64,000 bases of DNA. Origin: Selaginella moellendorffii. Lineage: Eukaryota > Plantae > Lycopodiophyta. The translations under genes and the position numbers were made by a program. The stretch lies in NCBI RefSeq assembly GCF_000143415.4, contig NW_003314308.1:124001-188000 (forward strand). Direction: 5' to 3'. This document shows, piece by piece, positions 9,184 to 44,500 of this stretch; the stretch's first letter is position 1, and each line of letters opens with the position of its first letter. The notes below the pieces were generated by a model that worked only from the letters and a program-made list of their open reading frames with translations, was not told the DNA's origin and did not search any database.

Positions 9184-9682
9184 AAATAGCAATCAAGTAG
9201 TAAATCAAAACCATTTCCAACATTGCCCACAAAAACATTTGAAACCAATCACTAACAAACCAAGTTACTTTCCACATTTGCTACCAAGAAACATGCTAAA
9301 TAACAAAGCACTAAAGCAGCATGCTAAGGCAAACAGGCATCTTTTAAACCCTATGACCTAATGAATCCCTATGTCATGGGGTCAAATTTGATGATATATA
9401 GCATCTATGTATAGCACATTATTCATATTAGGATATCATCAACCCATGGGGCCAGCATTCATGGGGTATCCATGAGGCATCCAAATGACATTTAATGCCA
9501 AATTAATAAAAGACTGCCACATAAACACTATATTGTGAGTGAAATTTGCCATAGTAACACTCACCTTTTTCCGAATTGCACGCCATACGGTGCGTATTAT
9601 GATCGTTGCGCCACGCGTGGTCGCATAAACCCTAAAAATTCTTTCTTTCTTTCTTTCCAACAGTCTAAATTTCGGGGGGACG

Positions 9683-27556: not shown

Positions 27557-29323
27557 TTACATGGAGGCCTTTTGTCTAATCTCTGTGGAGGAGAGATCCA
27601 CACGAAAAACGTTCTCTGGAAGGGACGAAAACATTTCTTTCACTTCTTCTGGAACATTAACATCCAACATTGTCTGCAAAAAGAATGCATCAATAACGAT
27701 CATGGGAACAATAAAAATTTCACCTTGAAAACGCCATCGACGATGCGTCCCGCAACCATGAAATCACACCCGAGTCTCTGTACGTTCAGGAGAACTTCCA
27801 TCATTCTCTCCCTGCTTCCACCATAGTACTTCTCCTGAAGAGATCAATTTTCGTGAAAGTGATGCGAGCAATGATATATAGCTTACATTGACAAGTCTCA
27901 TCGCTGTGTCAACGCCGACGAGAAACGTACTGTCCGGGAGAATTTCCGCTTTCTTGTAGAAGAAAGGCTGGTTGGTCACTATCATAGTCTTTCCTGGTGA
28001 ATTCACAAACATCGTGAGAACAGACCTCCTAGAATTCTCTCTCCATACCTCTTTCCACGAACTGCTTCACTCGCTGCCTGATCTCATGAACTGGAAGCGC
28101 TGGCTTGTCTGCGTTAATTGCTGATAGCTCGAAACACGGACTGCCGCCTTGCACAAGGCTGTAACTTGCGTTAGATCAACAAAAACATTTTCTATCAGGA
28201 AACTTACGTGCATGCCGTGCTCATCAGTGTAAGATGACCTTCGTGCAATGGATTAAAAGCACCGGAAAGAACGACCCTTCTGCCGGTTCTACGATCTTTG
28301 CTATCTGTATCACGACTTATGAAAAAACTAGCACTGAGCAAATTTCGAAGTACCTTCACCAGGATAACGGACCATGCAGACATTTCCATGTATTAGCTGC
28401 TCGAGCTCTTCGTCCTCTGTGTAATTCAGCCTCGACTCTCGAATTTCTTCCTCAGGGGTCTTCAATTCTACCGGTACCGTATTTCCAATCTCACAAACGT
28501 CAGCCATAGCCTGGACATAAATCAAAAGCCTGGGCGAACTGAAAAGCCTGGTCATAAAAATCATAACCTTGATCAGGAGCTGACTGGATAGACAATCCTC
28601 TCCAAAACGATCTCTATATCCCTGGAGATGAGATGAGAACAATCGATAAAATTCGTTGCTGTAAATATACAAGACCTTGTAAAGAGTGAGGTCATATCTC
28701 CAAAGAGATGAATGCGTTCGAGCAGATATGTGGCATCTGGAAAGAAAAAATGAAAATAAAACTCTTCCACGAAGAACACGAAAACAAAGTCACCTGTGAT
28801 CTCCTCGCTTGGGACTCCCAGTCGTCAACGCACCAGTGACTCCAAATCCAGCCACCAGAGTGCCTGCACTGCATTCCAAGAAAAAATCCGCTCACTCGAT
28901 CGAGAAAAAACTCTAGTAGAAATCACACCTGGTAGCGAGAGAGTAAGAGCTCGATTGTAAGCAGCGGTAGCCATCTCATCGGCTACTTCACGACTAGCAT
29001 ATTGCTGTGGAGCCTAAAATCCAAAGATCTTTCTTTGTTAGATCGAAGATATTCTAGCCTACTCTTCCAAGGAGCTGGATCATCGACGCGCGCGTATAGG
29101 GAACTGTGGCTTCCAGCAGCGTCTGTGAAGCTCGCGGCACCGACAGCAGCCACCCGAGCGCCTAGAATCCATAGAAATCCCCGATAGCAATCAAGCTAGG
29201 AATCGATCGATCGATCCACACAATGCGGCTGCTGACCTGCGATGCGCCGCCGGCGAGGTGAAGAACAGCGTGCCTTGGCGAGGCGTGGATCGCCTCGATC
29301 GCCGCCTTCATGGCCGAGTCCAT
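27557..29323 (-). CDS. Plant nucleotidyltransferase-superfamily protein (CinA-like N-terminus + HxGH cytidylyltransferase-like domain), multi-exon
   Basis: MDSAMKAAIEAIHASPRHAVLHLAGGASQ|ALGWLLSVPRASQTLLEATVPY; VVLSGAFNPLHEGH; FELSAINADKP; NQPFFYKKAE; VGVDTAMRLVNEKYY; DLSSTEIR. Confidence 0.88.
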
Positions 29324-29356
29324 CGAATTGGAAGAACCCTAAAATATTTCACTATC

Positions 29357-29645
29357 ATGAGCAGGCCAAGGCCCGTCGTCAAGCTCGGATGCTCCGGCAA
29401 GTACTACATCACTCCTGATCCGATCGCGCAATCCTGGGACGCTCTCGGGCCGATGATCCCGTCCCAGGAGCATCGGCTATCAACAAACAGTCAGCTCCTT
29501 CGCTGGCACGGAAATATTTCGGCAGGATCGCTTGCGGCAGGAGATGGAGGCCGAGATCAATCGCCTCCAGATCGTGAGCAGCTCGCCAGAGCTCGTGCAA
29601 GGCTTGCTTTGCGATAGAGACGATGGTGATAATGTCACTGGAGAG
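29357..29645 (+). pseudogene. Deletion-riddled remnant of the UFL1 5' end
   Basis: Blocks match the intact UFL1 at ~41604-41730, 41766-41821, 41894-41935 and 42297-42343 (e.g. gaaatatttcggcaggatcgcttgcggcaggagatggaggccgagatcaatcgcct). Confidence 0.88.
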
Positions 29646-29939: not shown

Positions 29940-31613
29940 GTTCTTGCCTGGGTTTTCGGGCAATGTACGCGGAGTGTGGCTCCATGGTGGAGCTCATCGC
30001 GTGTTTGAGAGGATCCGGGAGCACGATCTAGTGTCGTGGAATACCATTATCCTGGGCTATGCGGAGAATGGAGAGTGTGGTGAGGCCTTGGAACTTTTCT
30101 CTCGCATGGAGGGCGTCGAGGGCCTTGCTCCGAATCGAGTGACTTTCCTGGCAGCGATCAAAGCCTGCGCTCGGTTTGCTGCGAGAGAAGAAGGGAGGAA
30201 AGTTGGAGGAAAGCTTGTCAAGCTTGTAGCGCTAGAGCCTGGACGACGGCAATGATCACGGGCTATCAGGAAAACGACGAGAGCAGCATTGCTCTGGAAC
30301 TCTACTCGTGTCTCTGCCTTTAAGCAAGAACTCCGGCTTGCGAGCCTCGTTTCTTATTGGAGCACTAGCACAGGCCTTGAGAACCGCAACGTAGCTTCGA
30401 GCGTCTGGTACAATCCTGTCCCTTGTTTGCATGCGGCCGAAGAGCTCGAGAGCTGATTCTCCGTCCCCGTTCTCGGCATAGCCGAGAATCCACAGCACCA
30501 AGTTGCGACCCTTGATCCTGTCGAAAGCTTGACGACCATACTCGATGTTCCCACACTTTGCGAAGGCGTCCACCAGGCTGCTTGCCACGAAAATGTCTTG
30601 GTCGAATCCAGCATTTGCAGCTAGAGAGTGTATAGCTTTCACTCTCTCGAAACAACAGCCTTGATAGCTTTCCCTTCCACCTGTTCGCCGTCCACGCTTA
30701 AACAGGCCTTTAGTGCTGCACGCGATCTGGAGTCCACCCTTGTTCTTGGATTCTCCAAACAGCTCAAGAGCAGCTTCACCTCGTTCTCGGCATAGCTTTG
30801 AATCAGTGCACTCCACAAAGCTACGTCTCGCGTCAGCATCTTGTCAAACACTCGCTGAGAATCCCACACTGCGAGTAGACGAAGATCAAACTGTTCGCCA
30901 GGAAGTGATCCAACATGCAACCGCACTTCATTGCCTCCGAGTGAAGCTCCAAGCACGTAAGTTTCACCATCTTTCCACCGATTTCTTTTAAACTGTCCGT
31001 TGTATCCGCTGTACAAGCCGCACAAGCTTTTACGGTCGCAAGGAAAGTAACTCGATTCGGCATGACTTTGCATCCCCACAAATAACTCCAAATCCAGCCC
31101 GCCTTCACCATTCACGGCATAAGCTAGAATCATCGCGTTCTAGGACACCAAAGTAGGCTGAATCAAGACTCCGTTGGCGTCGACTAAACTTCCACAACCG
31201 GCGGACATAGCGATCAGCGTGTTGGCCACCGAAGAACCGAATCCACACCCACCTCGACCAGCCAGAGAGTGTATTGCTAAAACCTTCTCTCCAGGCACTG
31301 AACCTTCACAGCTCTCCCGTCTATCTTTTCGCCTCTCTCCTTCTCTGCCAGGTCCGAGCAAAGTTACCAAGTCGGGAACACAGCCATCTTCTTCGCTTTG
31401 CATGCTCGAGAAAACGTCAAAGCCGACTGCCCGTCACCAACCCATCCTGTCAAACATGGCCCAAGCGTCCACCATGCTTCCATGCGTACATATCCACCAG
31501 AGTGCTGGCCACGAATATGTCCGAGTTTAACCCACTCCTCACAGCTCGAGCGTGAACCTCTCGTCCAGGCTCTAGCGCTACGAGCTTGACAAGCTTTCCT
31601 CCAACTTTCCTCC
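29940..31613. pseudogene. PLS-class PPR gene fragments in both orientations
   Basis: AHRVFERIREHDLVSWNTIILGYAENGECGEALELF..PNRVTFLAAIKACA (+); DIFVASSLVDAFAKCG, FLANSLIFVYSQCG (-). Frameshifted. Confidence 0.9.
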
Positions 31614-31620
31614 AACTTGT

Positions 31621-32892
31621 GGGCCGTGCAGATTTGGCTAAAGTTCCCGAGGTGAAAGAACGCGTAGAGAAAATGCAGAAACATGTCGAGACTCAAAGTG
31701 AGACAGCAACGGGGTTAGCTTTCGATCTTAAGGTACTTAACCAGGCGCTCGAGCAACAGGTGCAGGACGACTTTGAGCGTGCTCCAGAATATTACAAATG
31801 GTTCGGAGGCGTTGTGTGCTTGCTTTGGTCTGATGACTTCCAGAGATTGAACCCGGAAGAATTCGTGAGAGACTCGTTGTCTAGGACGGACCTCGGCCAG
31901 CTATTGGAGTGCTTCAAACAGAAAGCTCAAGGGCAGAAAATATCTTGGGCTCTATTACCTTTCAGGAAGCCGGCTGCGAGCTCTTCATTCCGTTGCGAGC
32001 TCTTCATTGTTGCTGCAGGTCGATGATAAGCACTGTAGCAAATGTAAATCGCGTGAAGATCCTTCCCGAGGGAAATACCGAGGAAAGTGGATTGTATGCG
32101 ATGTTTGCCAACAGTGCTACCACTTTAGCTGTACCAGAGTTACTAAGAAGCAGGAGCTGGAAGTATTTTGGCAGTGTTCGTCCTGTAAGAGCATGAAAAG
32201 AGAAGAGCATTTGGAACCAAGGCGGCTGTTGCGATATTACGAAGGAGATCTGAAAGCTGCTCTACTGGAGGCCGGTGAGTTAGCGCTGACATCAGTTAAC
32301 ATTGGTTGGCTAATTGCGAATGACGGCAGGTGCTGATGTTATCCAGTATGTTTGGAGGCCATTGATCAAGAATGATGGGGCTGTGGACTACACTATTCTT
32401 CCTAGGACGCTGGCGCAACCAACTATAGCACCACGCCATCCAGTATCGGCGGAAGCTCTTAAAACACATCTCAGTGCTCTTCGTGCATGGAACGATATCT
32501 ATGGCGGGACTAGTAAGCCGGATGAGTTTGTACTCTGCTTCTTCCTGGCGGAATCGAACTATGGCGGGTTCGGCTTCCAGAGCTACCGCGACAAGTCCCG
32601 TAGGGTAGCTAAACAAGCTGTGAAAGGTTCGTTATATATGCGTTTCATAGCTGCTCATACTTATGGAATGAACAATGCAGGTATTCGCCAGTGCAAAGTG
32701 TTGCTGCGGTACACTGCACCCGTTCCATGTGCAGAGGAAATGGAGATTCCCAAGGGTGTCGAGATGGTCAATGACATCGAGGGGTGCAAGTTTGACGGTG
32801 AAGTGTGTAAACCTAATTATTTTGATCCTGTGGAGGCCGTCCTTCGATACGAGGAGGTGAGTGTGAACAAGAAGCGGAAGTTTGCTTTCTGA
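31621..32892 (+). pseudogene. 5'-truncated copy of the Crinkler-type NTPase/PHD/REase gene
   Basis: Begins mid-NTPase (GRADLAKVPEV) and lacks Walker A and the GFVFEE segment. The PHD exon and last exon remain open. Confidence 0.85.
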
Positions 32893-34146
32893 ATCCGTCT
32901 TGGAGAGTTTTTGTGTCTGTACTATCGCAAACTTTAGTGCCAAAGCAGAAAAGACTAGCATAGGGTGCTATTGCTCCAGATCGTCAGAAAGTCTCGATGG
33001 AGAAAGGTAGGCTGCCTTTTTCCTGTGACAAAAAAGAAAAGCCAGCGTTGTTATGGAGCATTCCTGCTAGCAATTTCCAGGATTTTTTCTTTTTTTCTTT
33101 TTTTTTTTCCATGAGATAGCTGAAAATTGAACAGAAAGCTTCCTCCGTAGCAACACTTCACCTCGGGTTCTAAACACAAACCGAGTGGAACAATTTCTCC
33201 TCCTCTCGAGCGCCAAATTGTGAGCTTCACAGACCCGTAGTAAGAAACGTTCTGAACTGTATTAGACATCATCTTCTATTGTATTTATAGTTATAATAAA
33301 ATATTATACTATTATTATATCATTTAAATGCCTGTTAATTTTTAAATTCCAAAATTAAAATATTTTTAATTTAAGAGTAATTTTGACAACGTTTTTATTT
33401 TTAAATGAGTTATAAAATGTAAAAAAATTGGCATGTTTTCATGTATTTTCTTACCAATTCTAATGACTATTGAAACACTGAGAACTGAAACCAATATTTG
33501 CGAGATTGAGTAATGAAATTATATACAAAGTGGTTCACACTAACTTATGGAGCATATTCTATGTTTCTACACGTTAAAGGTTAAAAAAATTGACTCTATT
33601 GCGTTATTTATGTTTGTTCATATATTGCACCCTTAGAAAAGACTGCTTCGCCTTGAAGCTTTAAGAATCTCATCACTAGCTTTTGATGATGCATAAGTAT
33701 TCTTGGCTTGGCTACCCAGTAGCTGCTCCAATTAGCCATCCAGCAGATGCCCTTTAACACTAAGACCTCCTCTCTGCATGTTTACAATCCATGTTAAATC
33801 AGCATTAAAATGTGTACAAAAGTGGTAGCAATGTTCTTATGCTTTCAAGAAGATAAACCGGAGCCTTACCGGGGGACCACTACCAAAAGGCTGTAATAGG
33901 CTTGAATTGCCAAGAAGAGGAGAATTTTATTAGCAAATGGGATTGCAAGACTAAGAAAGTTATAACCAAGTTTGTGAGATATACATGCAGATGCAAAGCT
34001 TCTTGAAGAGGAGCCATGTGTTTATCAAAACAAGGTCCAATTTCTTGCGTATTTTGTGATTGCTATGAACCCATGTGATTATCTGGTAAATTTTTAATTC
34101 CATAATGCAAGTTTTCATTTTTGTCTTTTTCTCACTTTTATTGAGT

Positions 34147-34866
34147 TTAATCCCTTTGCCATTCCTTAATCACAGGTTCGTACGCCTCCGCCACGTCTAC
34201 CGTACACGACTTGATCCACACGTTGCAAATCGGGCACTTTTTCTGGATCGTCGCCATTTGCACTGCGCACTCCTCACACATGAGATGGTGGCACGGCAGC
34301 AGCGCTTTCGTTCTCGGCCCCTCCCCACAGACACTACACTTGGGATCCATCAACGTACTTATCCTGTAGCTCGCATACGGCTTTGGCACCGTACAGCGTA
34401 CGACGAGCTGCCACCCTTCCGCCATAGCCGTGACCTTGGCCCCGAGCACGTACTTGATGGGAGGGAAGCCGTCTCTCACCGCTTCCAGAACGAGCCTTCC
34501 TTTGAAATTGCCCAAATCTGCACGGATCGTCGTGAGGATGAGATCCACTGGGGAGCCCAAGTCGAAAAGCCAGCTCCTGCCCATGCCCAAGACCGTGACC
34601 TTGGGATACTGGGGTGACGAGATTTGGAAAGAGTTGGCCGAAAGATTGTTGATGTCTTGTTGTTGTTGCTGCTGCCAGACGTTTGCTGCTAAAGGGAAGT
34701 TGTTTGAGGCGCTATTGAAGAAGAGGCGGGGGCTGTTGTGAAAAACTGGATTGCCGCTATTGTAGCCCAAGGAAGCCAAGGTCGCCTTAACTTCTTCAAA
34801 GAGAGCTGGTGGGAGGCCCGGAGGACACACTGTGTTCGCAGCACCGTTGCACCGAGAAAACGCCAT
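34147..34866 (-). CDS. Intronless C3HC4 RING-finger protein (copy 1)
   Basis: CSVC..ALLPCHHLMCEEC..KKCPIC. Intact 239-aa ORF with TATA-like TATAAAA upstream. Confidence 0.85.
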   Translation of the reverse strand: MAFSRCNGAANTVCPPGLPPALFEEVKATLASLGYNSGNPVFHNSPRLFFNSASNNFPLAANVWQQQQQQDINNLSANSFQISSPQYPKVTVLGMGRSWLFDLGSPVDLILTTIRADLGNFKGRLVLEAVRDGFPPIKYVLGAKVTAMAEGWQLVVRCTVPKPYASYRISTLMDPKCSVCGEGPRTKALLPCHHLMCEECAVQMATIQKKCPICNVWIKSCTVDVAEAYEPVIKEWQRD

Positions 34867-35169
34867 TGGAAATGAGTGAATACCTAGAAAGCTCTCGCCC
34901 CTGTTTTTATAATGCTGCTTACCTTTTCCCTAATCTTTAACTTAAATCAAAATTAGTGTTTATTTACATTTTCCTTTAATGTTGTGATTAACTTTGTTTG
35001 CTCGATTTCTTCGCAACTAGTCTCCTAGATTTTGCTATCATTTCTTCGCTAACACTGGGGAACACCAGGTTGATGATTTGTTTATTTTTGTTCAATCATT
35101 CTATCTCAGGTAGCATCGCTTGAAAAAATGTATAAATATTGGTTCTAGAACCTCCCTGCAGCCGCATAG

Positions 35170-36780: not shown

Positions 36781-39700
36781 ATCGATGCGGCTCTAGAACC
36801 AATATTTATACATTTTTTCAAGCGATGCTACCTGAGATAGAATGATTGAACAAAAATAAACAAATCATCAACCTGGTGTGCATAAAACCCCAGTGTTAGC
36901 GAAGAAATGATAGCAAAATCTAGGAGACTAGTTGCGAAGAAATCGAGCAAACAAAGACATTAAAGGAAAATGTAAATAAACACTAATTTTGATTTAAGTT
37001 AAAGATTAGGGAAAAGGGTACGCAGCATTATAAAAACAGGGGCGAGAGCTTTCTAGGTATTCACTCATTTCCAATGGCGTTTTCTCGGTGCAACGGTGCT
37101 GCGAACACAGTGTGTCCTCCGGGCCTCCCACCAGCTCTCTTTGAAGAAGTTAAGGCGACCTTGGCTTCCTTGGGCTACAATAGCGGCAATCCAGTTCCTC
37201 ACAACAGCCCCCGCCTCTTCTTCAATAGCGCCTCAAACAACTTCCCTTTAGCAGCAAACGTCTGGCAGCAGCAACAACAACAAGACATCAACAATCTTTC
37301 GGCCAACTCTTTCCAAATCTCGTCACCCCAGTATCCCAAGGTCACGGTCTTGGGCATGGGCAGGAGCTGGCTTTTCGACTTGGGCTCCCCAGTGGATCTC
37401 ATCCTCACGACGATCCGTGCAGATTTGGGCAATTTCAAAGGAAGGCTCGTTCTGGAAGCGGTGAGAGACGGCTTCCCTCCCATCAAGTACGTGCTCGGGG
37501 CCAAGGTCACGGCTATGGCGGAAGGGTGGCAGCTCGTCGTACGCTGTACGGTGCCAAAGCCGTATGCGAGCTACAGGATAAGTACGTTGATGGATCCCAA
37601 GTGTAGTGTCTGTGGGGAGGGGCCGAGAACGAAAGCGCTGCTGCCGTGCCACCATCTCATGTGTGAGGAGTGCGCAGTGCAAATGGCGACGATCCAGAAA
37701 AAGTGCCCGATTTGCAACGTGTGGATCAAGTCGTGTACGGTAGACGTGGCGGAGGCGTACGAACCTGTGATTAAGGAATGGCAAAGGGATTAAACTCAAT
37801 AAAAGTGAGAAAAAGACAAAAATGAAAACTTGCATTATGGAATTAAAAATTTACCAGATAATCACATGGGTTCATAGCAATCACAAAATACGCAAGAAAT
37901 TGGACCTTGTTTTGATAAACACATGGCTCCTCTTCAAGAAGCTTTGCATCTGCATGTATATCTCACAAACTTGGTTATAACTTTCTTAGTCTTGCAATCC
38001 CATTTGCTAATAAAATTCTCCTCTTCTTGGCAATTCAAGCCTATTACAGCCTTTTGGTAGTGGTCCCCCGGTAAGGCTCCGGTTTATCTTCTTGAAAGCA
38101 TAAGAACATTGCTACCACTTTTGTACACATTTTAATGCTGATTTAAACATGGATTATAAACATGCAGAGAGGAGGTCTTAGTGTTAAAGGGCATCTGCTG
38201 GATGGCTAATTGGAGCAGCTACTGGGTAGCCAAGCCAAGAATGTTTATGCATCATCAAAAGCTAGTGATGAGATTCTTAAAGCATCAAGGCGAAGCAGTC
38301 TTTTGTAAGGGTGCAATATATGAACAAACATAAACAATGCAATAGAGTCAATTTTTTTAACCTTTAACGTGTAGAAACATAGAATATGCTCCATAAGTTA
38401 GTGTGAACCACTTTGTATATAATTTCATTACTCAATCTCGCAAATATTGGTTTCAGTTCTCAGTGTTTCAATAGTCATTAGAATTGGTAAGAAAATACAT
38501 GAAAACATGCCAATGTTTTTACATTTTATAACTCATTTAAAAATAAAATCGTTGTCAAAATTACTCTTAAATTAAAAATATTTTAATTTTGGAATTTAAA
38601 ATTTAATAGGCATTTAAATGATATAATAATAAGTATAATATTTTATTATAACTATAAATACAATATGTCTAATACAGTTCAGAACGTTTCTTACTACGGG
38701 TCTGTGAAGCTCACAATTTGGCGCTCGAGAGGAGGAGAAATTGTTCCACTCGGTTTGTGTTTAGAACCCGAGGTGAAGTGTTGCTACGGAGGAAGCTTTC
38801 TGTTCAATTTTCAGCTATCTCATGGAAAAAAAAAAAGAAAAAAAGAAAAAAATCCTGGAAATTGCTAGCAGGAATGCTCCATAACAACGCTGGCTTTTCT
38901 TTTTTGTCACAGGAAAAAGGCAGCCTACCTTTCTCCATCGAGACTTTCTGACGATCTGGAGCAATAGCACCCTATGCTAGTCTTTTCTGCTTTGGCATTA
39001 AAGTTTGCGATAGTACAGACACAAAAACTCTCCAAGACGGATTCAGAAAGCAAACTTCCGCTTCTTGTTCACACTCACCTCGTCGTACCGAAGGACGGCC
39101 TCCACAGGATCAAAATAATTAGGTTTACACACTTCACCGTCAAACTTGCACCCCTCGATGTCATTGACCATCTCGACACCCTTGGGAATCTCCATTTCCT
39201 CTGCACATGGAACGGGTGCAGTGTACCGCAGCAACACTTTGCACTGGCGAATACCTGCATTGTTCATTCCATAAGTATGAGCAGCTATGAAACGCATATA
39301 TAACGAACCTTTCACAGCTTGTTTAGTTACCCTACGGGACTTGTCGCGGTAGCTCTGGAAGCCGAACCCGTCATAGTTCGACTCCGCCAGGAAGAAGCAG
39401 AGTACAAACACATCCGGCTTACTAGTCCCGCCATAGACATCGTTCCATGCACGAAGAGCACTGATATGTGTTTTAAGAGCTTCTGCCGATACTGGATGGC
39501 GTGGTGCTATAGTTGGTTGTGCCAGCGTCCTAGGAAGAATAGTGTAGTCCACAGCCCCATCATTCTTGATCAATGGCCTCCAAACATACTGGATAGCATC
39601 AGCACCTGCCGTCATTCTCAATTAGCCAACCAATGTTAACTGATCTCAGCGCTAACTCACCGGCCTCCAGTAGAGCAGCTTTCAGATCTCCTTCGTAATA

Positions 39701-40549
39701 TCGCAACAACCGCCTTGGTTCCAAATGCTCTTCTCTTTTCATGCTCTTACAGGACGAACACTGCCAAAATACTTCCAGCTCTTGCTTCTTAGTAACTCTG
39801 GTACAGCTGAAGTGGTAGCACTGTTGGCAAACATCGCATACAATCCACTTTCCTCGGTATCTTCCCCGGGAAGGATCTTCACGCGATTTACATTTGCTAC
39901 AGTGCTTATCATCGACCTACAGCAACAAGACTTACTAAATGTAAGAAACGAACAGTAAATCACCATAAGCACCACGGTATGCGTAGCTCCGCGCAGTACA
40001 TAAGCAATGCAAAGCTCCTCAAAAACAAAGCCTCGAAGAACCCCATATTCAGGAATGTCCAACCAAGTCCGCATGAAGAACTCCAGGTCTATCGCTTTCA
40101 TCCTCGTCAGAGCAAGAGTAAACTGGGCCTGGACTTTAACACTGCAAAAGTCAAGGTAGTACTCACGGAATGAAGAGCTCGCAGCCGGCTTCCGGAAATG
40201 TAACAGAGCCCAAGATATTTTCTGCCCTTGAGCTTTCTGTTTGAGGCACTCCAATAGCTGGCCGAGGTCCGTCCTAGACAACGAGTCTCTCACGAATTCT
40301 TCCGGGTTCAATCTCTGGAAGTCATCAGCCCAAAGCAAGCGCACAATGCCTCCGAACCATTTGTAGTATTCTGGAGCAGCTCTGACACGCTCGAAGCCGT
40401 GCTGCACCTGTTGCTCGAGCGCCTGGATAAGTACCTTAAGATCGAAAGCTAACCCCGTTGCTGTCTCACTTTGAGTCTCGACATGTTTCTGCAGCATTTT
40501 CTCTACGCGTTCTTTCACCTCGGGAATTTTAGCCAAATCTGCACGGCCC
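36682..40549. repeat. Right arm of ~3.7-3.9 kb inverted repeat
   Basis: Reverse complement of 31621-35270. Confidence 0.95.
37074..37793 (+). CDS. Intronless C3HC4 RING-finger protein (copy 2)
   Basis: Same as copy 1 except F42P. TATAAAA at ~37029. Confidence 0.85.
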   Translation: MAFSRCNGAANTVCPPGLPPALFEEVKATLASLGYNSGNPVPHNSPRLFFNSASNNFPLAANVWQQQQQQDINNLSANSFQISSPQYPKVTVLGMGRSWLFDLGSPVDLILTTIRADLGNFKGRLVLEAVRDGFPPIKYVLGAKVTAMAEGWQLVVRCTVPKPYASYRISTLMDPKCSVCGEGPRTKALLPCHHLMCEECAVQMATIQKKCPICNVWIKSCTVDVAEAYEPVIKEWQRD

Positions 40550-41331
40550 GCAAGCATGATACTTGCTCCAAAGTCGTATTCCACGTTTGCCCACTTCTCA
40601 AGACTGCGAAGCGTTTTCTTCAGTGTTTCCAGCTCACTCGCAAGTTTCTCGTAGTGGATCCTCCACAAGTCCACCAACGCCGCGTACTCATCTTCCTCCC
40701 ACGGGTACATGTACATGACAGTCTTCTTTCGATCGGGTTTGGCAGCTTTAACGTTTTCCTCGGCTGGCGAAGCCGCAAGTAATACAACAGGTCCGATAGC
40801 ACCATCTGTGGGGACTTTCTGATTTATCAGATGCCACGAGGCTTTGGCAAACGTGGCCGCGGTGAAGCTGTCGCGCTTTGCCACACGGACCGCAGTGCCT
40901 TTGAACTCCCATACGAAGCCATCAGACTCGTAGAGAATGTGCAGCTCCAGCTTGACTTTGGAATCTCTCAACTCTATAGCGGTTCTGACGATGAAGTACC
41001 AAAGGAACGCTGACTTGCCCACACCCGAATTCCCGCTTATGTGGCAAATCCAGTCGTTGGCAGAAAACCCAGACTCTGAGCAGATCTGCCAAAATAAGGA
41101 GTCAAACATCCTCCTTACGTACAAGCTGGACAGTCTCTTGTCTGGCGAGACCGAGATGGGATTAAACATCTTGATAACCTTGCCCGCTGCAATATCCTCC
41201 CGCTTCAAACCCCAGACATAGCTCCACCAAGACTGTAGCGATTCCATCTCTGCGGCAAGCGCACACAAATCAGGCAACGAACATAGCCCAGCTACACTCC
41301 ACTTACCGTCTGGCCCCAACTCGGCGCTCAT
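39043..41331 (-). CDS. Crinkler/RHS-type P-loop NTPase + restriction-endonuclease-fold protein with inserted PHD finger (exons 41331-39964, 39916-39661, 39605-39043; 728 aa)
   Basis: LYVR..HISGNSGVGKSAFLWYF (Walker A)..LLAASP..YMYPWEEDE..FGGIVR..RGFVFEE | PHD CSKC..WIVCDVC..YHFSC..WQCSSC | YVWRPLIKNDGAVD..LAQPTIAPRHPV..LCFFL..FGFQSY; C-terminal KKRK. The 47- and 55-bp GT-AG introns keep frame with no stops. Confidence 0.82.
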
Positions 41332-41557: not shown

Positions 41558-44500
41558 ATGGATGCCGAGCTCCGGGAGCTGGAGCGCCTGTTCGAGGCGG
41601 CGCAGCAGGCCAAGCCGACCGCGCGGCTCTCAGAGCGCAGCGTCGTGGAGCTCGTCGTCAAGCTCCAGCAGCTGGGAATCCTCGATGCCGATCTCTTGCA
41701 CACCGTCTCCGGCAAGGAGTACATCACTCAGGTATGGCTCCTCATCCAAGGATTCCTCCAATCCGGAAATATTTCGGCAGGATCGCTTGCGGCAGGAGAT
41801 GGAGGCCGAGATCAATCGCCTGGGCCGTGTCTCGCTCGTGGATTTGGCGTCCTTGGTCGGCGTCGATCTCTTCCATTGCGAGCGCCAGGCCGACCAGATC
41901 GTGAGCAGCTCGCCGGAGCTCATGCTCGTGCAAGGCGAGGTGGTCTCGACCAAGTACTGGGATAATCTCGCGGAGGAGGTGAACGAGACTTTGCAAGAGG
42001 CCAGCCAAGTCTCTCTCGGAGAGCTTGCGAGACGCTATGGTGTTGGAGCGGAGCTCTTGACTGGGATGCTCTCGTCCCGGATAGGTACCATTGTAAGAAG
42101 CGTGTTCTTGGATTTTTGGTAGAAGATCTAACGCTGGAACTTTTTTCTTTTCTTTTTTCTCGATAGATTCACGCGAAGTTGGAAGGAGGCCAACTCTATA
42201 CTCCAGCATACGTTGCTCGAGTGAAAGCCACGGTTCGCGGAGCTTTGAGAGCCATCACAGTGCCTACGTCCTTGCAAAGTGTGTGGAACCTTTTGCAAGG
42301 TTTGCTTCGAGATAGAGACGATGGTGGTAATGTCACTGGAGAGCACAGCTTGTTTCATATGGTGTTGAACGAGCTTGTCGCGGAGGAAGCGGTGAAAGGT
42401 ACTCTTCGTGGATCAATCTGGACACCAGCGGTAAGAACACTCTTTTCTTTTTTCAGAGATTAACTATTCTATGGTGTCAGGTGTTCGCTCACTCGCAACG
42501 TGAAAGCGTTGAAGCATTCTATTCTCAGGTGCTCTGCTTGGTTTGTCTCTCTTTATACAAGCTTATTCATGTTTGAGTTTCAGAACTCCTACATTACTTA
42601 TGATGCTCTTCAGAAGCTTAACATCTCTCAGCCCAGGCAATACTTGCAGGTAAGTTATCTCACATGTCCTTTCGCTTATTAATTTTGCTTCAGACTAAAT
42701 ATCCAGAAGGCATCGCTTTGGACAATGTATTTGTTCACAATTCCTTCATAAGTCTGCTGGATTCAGCTGCGGAAGAGTCAGTCAAAGGGGGAGGATGGTA
42801 ATTCGAATTCGGCTAGGCTATGTACAAATGAAATGGTTCTTTCAGGTTGGATGCCCTTGACGTCCTTCCATCAACTTTTGGATGCTCAGATTCTGGAAAG
42901 CTGCTACTTTTGTGCCCATTCGTACAACGAGCGTTGAAGGTACATTATGACTGGCAGCCTTATTTGGAGTTTACATTGTATGTGTCGATTTACAGGATTC
43001 AACAGCGACCCTTGTGGCCGAAACATGCATCGTCGGTACAGGCTTTGTAAAGGTCTCTAGTTAAGTGGCTGCCATCATTTTCTAACTCGATGAATTTGGA
43101 CAGGCACTGCTGGAAAAGTTTCAAAATATGTTACGAGAAATTCAAGACAAAACATTCTCGACTCTTGAAGTGAAACTCGAAGCGGAACCTGAGCCTGAGC
43201 TGGACGAGAATGAAACAAAGCCGTTTGCTTCAAGATCGAAGAAGAACGACAAGAAGCAAAAGGATAATAGTATCCGAAAGGAAGAAGAAAACGAAGAAAA
43301 GTCGGGGAAAAGTAAGAAGAAGACAGCAAGACACAAGTCAAGCAAGACTCCATCTGTCAAAGAAGCAGTGCCTTCAAAGGCGAGAAAGGGCTCTCCTGCG
43401 GACGAGATGGATCTTTTGGCTGAAGAGAAGCTATCAAAGAAAATCATCGAATGGTATCCAGACCTTGAGGCTGCCGGAACAGGTATCGTCCATCTGTAAA
43501 TCCACTTCTAACTCTGACCGAGCAACATTGTGCGCAGAGGATGGCGATACAGGTGTTCTTGCAAAATGTTTGGCTGATCAACTGCGACCACAATTGATCT
43601 CATACATGACGTCCCTCAAGCGTGCTTATCTTGGAGCGAAAACAGAGGAGAGGAGAAAACGGATAGATGCACTGCAGCGCAAAATTGATGAGGTTGTATT
43701 TCTGTATGTTTTAGAAATTTCTGATATATCTGCAACAGGATTATGCTAATCTGCAGCTGTTCTCAAAGGCAATAGAGCTGTTTGAAGATGACAAGGGAAT
43801 GGAAGTCGGTATTGCTGAGCTCTTTTATTACAGGCTAACGATGGATATTTGCAGGCTGTCTTGCACAAGCATCTGTTGCGTTCAACTGCTTCCGAAATAA
43901 CGGATGTTTTCCTAGAAACACAGGTTTTACCGAAATTTAATTGAGCGCTTATGATTCTTATTGTATACATTTGCAGGCTTTGGAACATAGGATAGAAAAT
44001 GCCGAAAGTGCTGGAGCTCAACCTTGCAAGCCATTTTCGATGGCAGTGAGGATGTCCCTGGTATGATAGTCCCTGTGGTGACACTGACTCATCCTATCTT
44101 ATCAGGCCAAAAATCTACCTGAACCTCTCTCCTCTGCAGCAACTGAGATGGTGGCGTCTCTGGAAGGAAAGGTGTGCTTTAATATCTAACATATCCATAT
44201 CCGCTGTCACTAACACGAGAGAAATCTTCCTAGAACATTGGAGCATTTGATTCTGCTCTTGAAGCGAGCGTCACGGAAAGGTACGCAAACTGGACGAATT
44301 ATAAATGCTAAGTGCCTTCAGTTGGGTGTTCTTGTAGTGGGCTACGTGTGAGAAAGCTTGACAAGAAGGGAGAACGATCATTGTTTTTTGCATATCGAAA
44401 GGTTAGCGTGCTAATTGATATGGTTGTAGCAAAATTGGCAACGAGAAGTCCTTTCTATCCAGAACCTCTCAGAACAAGTGGACCAAGAACAAGATCCCAT

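Follow-up and report, generated by a model that had tools for sequence, protein, structure and literature searches.

We analysed a 64,000-nucleotide stretch of the genome of the lycophyte Selaginella moellendorffii (NCBI RefSeq assembly GCF_000143415.4, contig NW_003314308.1, positions 124,001 to 188,000 of the forward strand), hereafter the window. A gene at positions 41331-39043 on the minus strand encodes a predicted protein in which an NTPase and a nuclease-fold domain of the Crinkler/RHS type are combined with a PHD finger lying inside the nuclease fold. The NTPase-nuclease module is otherwise familiar from Crinkler/RHS proteins of fungi, oomycetes, and trypanosomes. We hold this identity and architecture of the gene with high confidence. 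An earlier annotation of the same DNA, made from the letters and open reading frames alone (the sequence-only reading), had already proposed a plant-encoded Crinkler-type NTPase-nuclease here.

In protein searches, the best database matches of the gene were S. moellendorffii proteins. The long exon matched SELMODRAFT_421858 (P0001, 684 amino acids) best, with an E value of 1e-260. Because the window and the locus of this protein on GL377619.1 (L001) have the same neighbours (UFL1 in head-to-head orientation, a pair of RING genes, and PPR genes) and share 96.6% DNA identity across 2690 nucleotides (nt), the window gene is, as judged from these comparisons, an allele, a near-copy or another accession's copy of SELMODRAFT_421858. 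The Selaginella best matches and the shared neighbours also bore out the claim that the gene is plant-encoded. All 691 of 691 codons were open both in the window and in L001; the gene is intact in two haplotypes or assemblies. The locus has carried the annotation of a hypothetical protein since 2011, and its UniProt label is “PHD-type domain-containing.” For searches with the whole protein, P0001 (the allele, as the 684-residue model) or the paralogue P0002 was used as a stand-in, and the window exons were queried separately.

The longest open reading frame at the locus, of 530 codons (39739-41331, minus strand), had been interpreted as the first exon read through an intron. A GT donor at 39963 precedes its final 74 codons, and in L001 the same frame runs into a stop four codons beyond the equivalent donor; thus, the length of this frame is an accident of read-through. 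The two introns proposed earlier (39963-39917 and 39660-39606) were also confirmed: both have GT..AG borders and keep the frame, and their removal reproduced the junctions of P0001, which join ..VVLM to V/GDKHC.. and ..LLEAG to ADAIQ... The exons diverged from L001 by 2.6-3.5%, against the higher values of introns B and C given in Table 1.

However, the 728-residue product deduced from these two introns had to be shortened. Two additional introns of 57 and 54 nt, both in frame, reduce it to 691 residues, and a product of this length from five exons is likely on the present gene model. The segments 41306-41250 and 39308-39255 were assigned as introns because the paralogous locus SELMODRAFT_409910 (L002) has in-frame stops in both; introns A and D appear to be open in frame in the window by chance. 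The position of intron D is occupied by residues in no family member of the 26-row C-terminal alignment (A3). RefSeq models of paralogues are 692-693 residues long, close to the 691 of the window model. The motifs listed in the sequence-only reading (GNSGVGKS, GFVFEE, GAVD, AQPT, HPV, FQSY, and KKRK) were all found where it had placed them. The tail ..VSVNKKRKFAF, followed by the stop codon, is kept in L001 and in L002; the 2011 database model (P0001) splices instead at a GTGAGT near 39078, after ..RY(D/E)E and just before the KKRK tail, which splicing there would remove. The same model cuts out as an intron a segment of 33 nt (V-R-R-M-F-D-S-L-F-W-Q, after ..LSSLY), which we rejected as an intron, as it contains the family-wide motif L-Y-V-R.

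Table 1. Coordinates of the gene, its motifs and its truncated copy in the window.
Feature	Position	Strand	Description
Exon 1	41307..41331	-	ATG start; MSAELGPD and the first base of the following codon; GTAAGT donor next; junction identical in P0001
Intron A	41250..41306	-	57 nt, GTAAGT..CAG; two in-frame stops in the L002 counterpart; removed in the P0001 model
Exon 2	39964..41249	-	P-loop NTPase, coiled-coil hairpin, helical/winged middle domain, first nuclease-fold helix with G-F-V-F-E-E
G-F-V-F-E-E motif	40032-40015	-	First helix of the nuclease fold, exon 2
Intron B	39917..39963	-	47 nt, GT..AG; directly borders the PHD finger on its N-terminal side; 10.6% divergence from L001, against 2.6% for the exon
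Exon 3	39661..39916	-	PHD finger, then first core strand and helix of the nuclease fold
Intron C	39606..39660	-	55 nt, GT..AG; 7.3% divergence from L001; junction as in P0001 and P0002
Exon 4	39309..39605	-	Nuclease-fold core; near-invariant family columns kept
R-P..K-N..A-V-D	39582-39547	-	Exon 4
L-A-Q-P-T	39525-39511	-	Exon 4
H-P-V, F-V-L-C-F-F, F-Q-S-Y	exon 4	-	Nuclease-fold motifs
Intron D	39255..39308	-	54 nt, GT..CAG; in-frame stop and indels in L002; removed in the P0001 model
Exon 5	39043..39254	-	Last core strand I-R-Q-C-K, acidic/Cys-rich stretch, tail ..VSVNKKRKFAF, stop codon
KKRK	39066-39055	-	Exon 5 tail
Second copy	31586-32892	+	Other arm of the inverted duplication; 5'-truncated, internally deleted; annotated elsewhere as the 268-residue SELMODRAFT_421855

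Domains of the predicted protein

Exon 3 matched the whole Pfam profile of the PHD finger (PF00628) with 29.2 bits (cut-off 24; E 9.6e-7). All eight C4HC3 ligands are present, spanning positions 39901 to 39749. The best sequence matches of this domain in the PDB were MLL3, AIRE PHD1, PHF21A, ATXR5, WSTF, and CHD4 (E 1e-4 to 1e-3), and in a Foldseek search against the PDB the sole matches were PHD fingers. The earlier assignment of a genuine C4HC3 PHD finger was thus supported by the profile score, the ligands and the fold. However, the exon is not self-contained, as had been assumed. Part of the nuclease core, the ..LLRYYEGDLKAALLEAG strand and helix, is encoded there too, and LLRYYEGD at 39709-39686, within this exon, forms part of the first core strand and helix of that fold.

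Both the window and P0001 have Cys two positions ahead of the zinc-binding His (Q-Q-C-Y-H), whereas the paralogues P0004, P0005, P0006, and P0008 carry Trp at the same position (K-W-Y-H or G-W-Y-H). The window copy therefore lacks the aromatic cage Trp, two residues ahead of the His, by which a reader of histone H3 trimethylated at lysine 4 (H3K4me3) is recognised, and the sequence-only reading was right to point to Cys there. Because these four paralogues carry Trp, we regard the Cys as a derived state of this branch, on the basis of the aligned sequences. PHD fingers of the AIRE PHD1, PHF21A (BHC80), ATXR5, and CHD4 type read unmethylated H3K4. They resemble the window domain in their C4HC3 ligands and were among its top PDB sequence matches, and those of AIRE and PHF21A likewise have a non-aromatic residue two positions ahead of the zinc-binding His. 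The window domain differs from these four in the longer loop (17 residues) that separates its first two Cys pairs.

The C-terminal part was modelled with AlphaFold from the 26-row alignment A3. The model had a mean predicted local distance difference test score (pLDDT) of 75.4, near 90 in the core, and a predicted template-modelling score (pTM) of 0.71. The elements follow each other as a helix (with the F-E motif), the PHD finger, a strand, a helix, three strands (A-V-D; L-A-Q-P-T), a helix, and two further strands. The sequence-only reading was open to refutation if the segments flanking the PHD finger had no restriction-endonuclease fold; in the model, these flanks are predicted to form one restriction-endonuclease-like fold. 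A shape search of the ESM Atlas with the C-terminal model placed a cluster with the Crinkler header first (template-modelling score, TM, 0.55; 168 residues; 2.3 A), and Mrr_cat clusters were listed too. The window has retained every one of the residues that are near-invariant in the family (G, F, E; P, D, P; Q, T; H; F; Q; Q). Structure searches also gave matches to the restriction-endonuclease fold for the nuclease-fold core.

The description of these segments as PD-(D/E)xK-like was only partly upheld. The fold and the listed motifs stand, including the conserved Glu in the first helix and the conserved Asp in the second strand, but Q-x-T takes the place of (D/E)-x-K as the third motif, with a nearly invariant Gln and a Thr that is invariant in 26/26 rows. 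Because of this third motif, catalysis is something we infer and do not read from the sequence. We use “nuclease” as a designation of the modelled fold, for which the cutting of DNA and its mere binding are both possible. No sequence similarity (4-12% identity) relates the domain to the type II restriction enzymes R.BspD6I, Bse634I, Cfr10I, and NgoMIV or to Mrr_cat, and it differs from the PD-(D/E)xK nucleases of the type II/Mrr kind in the Q-x-T motif and in the 60-residue zinc finger inserted after the first helix.

In the N-terminal part, the Walker A motif GNSGVGKS lies at 41034-41011 (minus strand), and its three Gly and its Lys (G, G, G, K) were invariant or nearly so in a 29-row N-terminal alignment (A4). 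In the Walker B strand W-H-L-I-N-Q (40819..40836, minus strand), Asn replaces the conserved Asp of the family, which is found in fungal rows (W-Y-L-V-D) and in the paralogues P0004, P0054, and P0006 (H-L-I-D-Q). The window, P0001, P0002, and P0005 all have Asn here, so the acidic residue expected of a Walker B motif is missing from them. A model built from A4 had a pLDDT of 79.8. The NTPase fold was nearest to those of mS29/DAP3 and Apaf-1 in the structure search; when the N-terminal model of the whole exon was used, structure matches were dominated by coiled-coil proteins. A hairpin of two long helices (residues ~213-326, ~40680-40363) of ~100 residues is an insertion seen in the Selaginella members alone. 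In the middle domain, the model has helices at 343-364, strands at 377-380 and 392-395, and a helix at 398-408, an arrangement compatible with a winged helix. The N-terminus, MSAELGPDEMESLQ.., is acidic and non-hydrophobic by eye, and no signal peptide was evident there on the same inspection.

Family relationships and history in Selaginella

Outside the PHD finger, Pfam recognised nothing in the window pieces, P0001, or P0002, and the NTPase and nuclease parts had no match. The family assignment was obtained from other comparisons. An exhaustive phmmer search with residues 1-600 of the PHD-less paralogue P0002 against 1.84 billion representative sequences returned 51 proteins at E <= 1e-3. 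These included Selaginella paralogues (37-42% identity) with the PHD finger in the identical place, a hornwort transcript (P0014), and fungal and algal proteins. Two of the fungal proteins bear a Crinkler header according to Pfam: P0023 of Modicella (header E 8e-21), which matched in the NTPase part (E 2.5e-6), and P0043 of Gryganskiella (header E 4.7e-19), which matched in the nuclease part (E 3.9e-4). By hhalign, a profile of eight Selaginella sequences matched one of eight fungal sequences with a probability of 99.9% (E 9.2e-34); the 425 aligned columns extend from the NTPase through the whole nuclease fold. On the fungal side the header columns were unmatched, and the PHD finger appeared as an insertion. 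The look-alikes of P0002 in the ESM Atlas were Crinkler, RHSP, and unnamed fungal clusters (feature similarity 0.94-0.99; TM 0.59-0.63; ~440 residues).

On the other hand, the Crinkler header (PF20147) had no Pfam match in the window pieces, P0001 or P0002, and the RHSP profile (PF07999) did not match P0001 or P0002 even at E 10. The earlier Crinkler/RHS-type assignment therefore holds for the module from NTPase to nuclease, which is homologous to that of header-bearing proteins, and does not extend to the header. Because this header is absent, the gene product does not qualify as a Crinkler effector in the strict sense. The CR module of P0023 and P0043 shares G-x-x-G-x-G-K-S, G-G-x-P-R, F-E, P..N..D, Q-x-T, and H-P with the window protein, and the predicted shapes agree (TM 0.55-0.63). 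In contrast to the Crinkler genes, the window gene belongs to a plant, contains four short introns, has neither a header nor an evident signal peptide, and is distinguished by the PHD finger within the nuclease fold, the NTPase hairpin of ~100 residues and, in the window copy, the Walker B Asn. The module of the trypanosomatid RHS proteins is alike in predicted structure (TM 0.59 over 444 residues; features 0.94), a likeness of shape and features and not a significant sequence match; the RHS_N domain, like the RHSP match, is missing from the window protein.

Zhang et al. (2016), as summarised in a review (PMC5289972), described the C-termini of Crinkler proteins as a CR module of NTPase, helix-turn-helix, and restriction-endonuclease domains, and reported Crinkler-type proteins in land plants and a transposon origin of the module. 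According to the same review, the toxicity of Crinkler proteins is attributed to the nuclease-fold domain, and mutation of this domain in CRN8 abolished cell death. Trypanosome RHS proteins are located in the nucleus and function on chromatin and in Pol II transcription (PMC6393297), which is a precedent for a chromatin role and agrees with a relative that bears a PHD finger. In the literature covered, which did not extend to the original article of Zhang et al. (2016), no paper naming the present loci was found, nor a link between Selaginella and Crinkler proteins beyond a passing mention.

The genes form a lineage-specific Selaginella family of about a dozen loci, some of them in a tandem array. 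A maximum-likelihood tree built from 29 rows of the N-terminal region, without fragments, repeat proteins, and P0001, grouped the six Selaginella rows in a clade (97/95), with a hornwort transcript on a long branch as its sister (100/99). The closest relative outside Selaginella is P0014, a sequence of 696 residues from the transcriptome of Nothoceros aenigmaticus (EukProt; E 8e-17), which has no PHD finger and may be a contaminant. The family has gained the PHD finger within the nuclease fold, where it separates the first helix, which holds the conserved Glu, from the first core strand; a second gain is the long coiled-coil hairpin in the NTPase region. The paralogues LOC9650130 and LOC9650134 (P0053, P0054), SELMODRAFT_428297 (P0005), and LOC112341278 (P0006) agree with the window gene in architecture and PHD insertion point and belong to one clade with it. 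They differ in the cage Trp (K-W-Y-H), in mostly having the Walker B Asp (Asn in P0005), and in a DNA-binding tail of Rho_N/SAP type; this tail was matched by Pfam in P0005 (E 1.9e-9) and is absent from the window gene, which ends in the short, basic KKRK tail instead.

The locus L002 preserves a decayed PHD exon at 9350-9600, with deletions of ~8, 10, and 96 nt and an acceptor changed from AG to AT. Because L002 retains these remnants, the PHD finger is older than the split between the two loci. The annotated SELMODRAFT_409910 protein of 746 residues skips the PHD finger and enters an unrelated C-terminal tail, and this model is probably wrong. The four intron positions checked are all common to the window gene and L002, including that before the PHD exon, where the acceptor has decayed in L002. 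Homology between the two loci is restricted to the coding region (41298-39044) and breaks off precisely at the stop codon; a DNA comparison of the two found neither common flanks nor terminal repeats. The last two exons (39044-39729, against 9474-10159 in L002) are 88.5% identical, with a synonymous divergence (Ks) of 0.13-0.24, whereas the long exon is 73.8% identical, with a Ks of 0.55. This difference in Ks suggests that the 3' half may have undergone gene conversion between the unlinked paralogues.

The ratio of non-synonymous to synonymous substitution rates (Ka/Ks) was 0.37 against the allele L001 (25 synonymous and 33 non-synonymous changes) and 0.48 against L002, the latter with a p value of 7e-8 for an excess of synonymous changes. 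By these codon comparisons, the window gene is under purifying selection. Two further S. moellendorffii models contain C-terminal fragments of the family, fused in P0010 (1082 residues) to LRR and DYW-deaminase sequences and in P0022 (528 residues) to a lipoxygenase fragment. Both are probably annotation chimeras over scattered gene fragments.

Proposed role and competing explanations

Crinkler/RHS modules are known mainly as pathogen effectors and from an enigmatic trypanosome family, and their biochemical activity has been largely deduced indirectly. Here, the module occurs in a free-living plant, has no delivery header, and holds a histone reader within its nuclease fold, which points to chromatin as the natural target. 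We consider it probable that the locus is a host gene with a Crinkler/RHS-type module, a PHD finger in the nuclease fold and a nuclear role directed at chromatin. The chromatin-directed mechanism, taken by itself, is proposed tentatively. The protein would act on chromatin in the nucleus, and its KKRK tail, described as NLS-like in the sequence-only reading, may serve in nuclear import; its PHD finger would dock on the histone H3 tail, probably not in the K4me3 state in the case of the window copy, and the middle domain and the nuclease-fold domain may both touch DNA. The NTPase could serve as a nucleotide-bound switch, and the window copy would probably bind the nucleotide and hydrolyse it poorly.

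Several observations weigh against this reading. The canonical catalytic Lys is absent family-wide (26 rows), so nuclease activity is not to be taken for granted. No RefSeq (XP_) model exists for the locus, although several paralogues have one, and among sequencing-run records no run filed as RNA was found to hold this stretch. In addition, the Walker B Asn, the cage Cys, the missing SAP/Rho_N tail, the sister locus with a decayed PHD exon, and the truncated copy 7 kb away together imply that this branch could be losing function.

The absence of the catalytic Lys leads to the possibility, less likely but a serious one, that the nuclease fold is catalytically dead throughout the family and that the protein binds DNA or RNA or serves as a scaffold, acting like trypanosome RHS proteins as a chromatin or transcription factor. 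The invariant Thr of the Q-x-T motif would fit such a protein, as would the Walker B Asn of the window copy, and a role in Pol II transcription and on chromatin is known for the RHS proteins (PMC6393297), whose module is alike in predicted shape. However, Glu, Asp, Gln, and His have remained invariant or nearly so over a very long divergence, which is the pattern of an active site, and it is the nuclease-fold domain that is held responsible for Crinkler toxicity, with no cell death caused by the CRN8 mutant (PMC5289972). The signs of loss listed above could instead concern the window copy alone, as a decaying paralogue on its way to a pseudogene, the function residing with sisters such as LOC9650130, LOC9650134, and LOC112341278. 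Besides the Asn, the Cys, and the lost tail, the lack of a RefSeq protein model, the loss of most of the PHD exon and of the AG acceptor in the closest paralogue, L002, and the truncated copy in the same inverted duplication agree with decay. We regard it as rather improbable: 691 codons are open in both the window and L001, both Ka/Ks values are significantly below 1, all eight zinc ligands and the near-invariant nuclease-fold residues are kept, and the Walker B Asn recurs in P0005 and may therefore be a tolerated state.

The many copies and fragments, some of them fused by annotation to other genes (P0010 to LRR-DYW, P0022 to lipoxygenase), together with the transposon origin of the module that the review (PMC5289972) credits to Zhang et al. 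(2016), would also be expected if the gene belonged to a selfish mobile element spreading in Selaginella, with the PHD finger picking chromatin for insertion or cutting. This is very improbable, given that the gene and L002 are homologous in their coding region only and have no common flanks or terminal repeats, the neighbouring genes are ordinary and identical in both assemblies, some paralogues stand in a tandem array, the four checked intron positions are shared with L002, and neither a transposase nor an integrase lies next to the gene. In particular, a transposon with terminal repeats was rejected, as flank homology between the window and L002 is absent.

Returning to the host gene with a chromatin-directed role, a bolder version, which we consider doubtful, is that the family represents a domesticated Crinkler/RHS module, i.e., nuclear, NTP-gated nucleases that the PHD finger would aim at H3 states, with the Trp and Cys versions reading different marks. 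If true, this would be a chromatin-addressed system of genome defence or genome editing with no described counterpart in plants. The paralogues offer natural contrasts for comparative assays, namely Trp or Cys at the cage, Asp or Asn in Walker B, and the presence or absence of the SAP tail. Apart from its function, a gene labelled “hypothetical, PHD-type domain-containing” has received a family assignment and a corrected model of five exons and 691 residues.

The surrounding inverted duplication

The gene lies within one arm of an inverted duplication, in which 31780-34930 is 96-100% complementary to 37010-40378. The second copy of the gene in the other arm (Table 1) has kept the PHD exon and lacks ~223 nt that match 39929-40164. 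The duplication includes two identical genes for RING-finger proteins of 239 residues (34147-34866, minus strand, and 37074-37793, plus strand); duplicated PPR-like open reading frames lie between these two genes and next to them. GL377619.1 shows this arrangement as well, and the duplication is therefore not an artefact of this assembly alone. A search of the immediate surroundings of the gene found no transposase or integrase.

The open reading frame at 29258-29617 contains a repeat of some of the 5' end of UFL1, a gene that starts at 41558, with ..NISAGSLAAGDGGRDQSP.. shared in one frame. Because of this repeat, the duplicated unit seems to have included the head-to-head UFL1 junction. An A/G-rich stretch of low complexity at 38817-38863 follows closely downstream of the Crinkler-like gene, and its mirror image lies at ~33071-33117 in the other arm.

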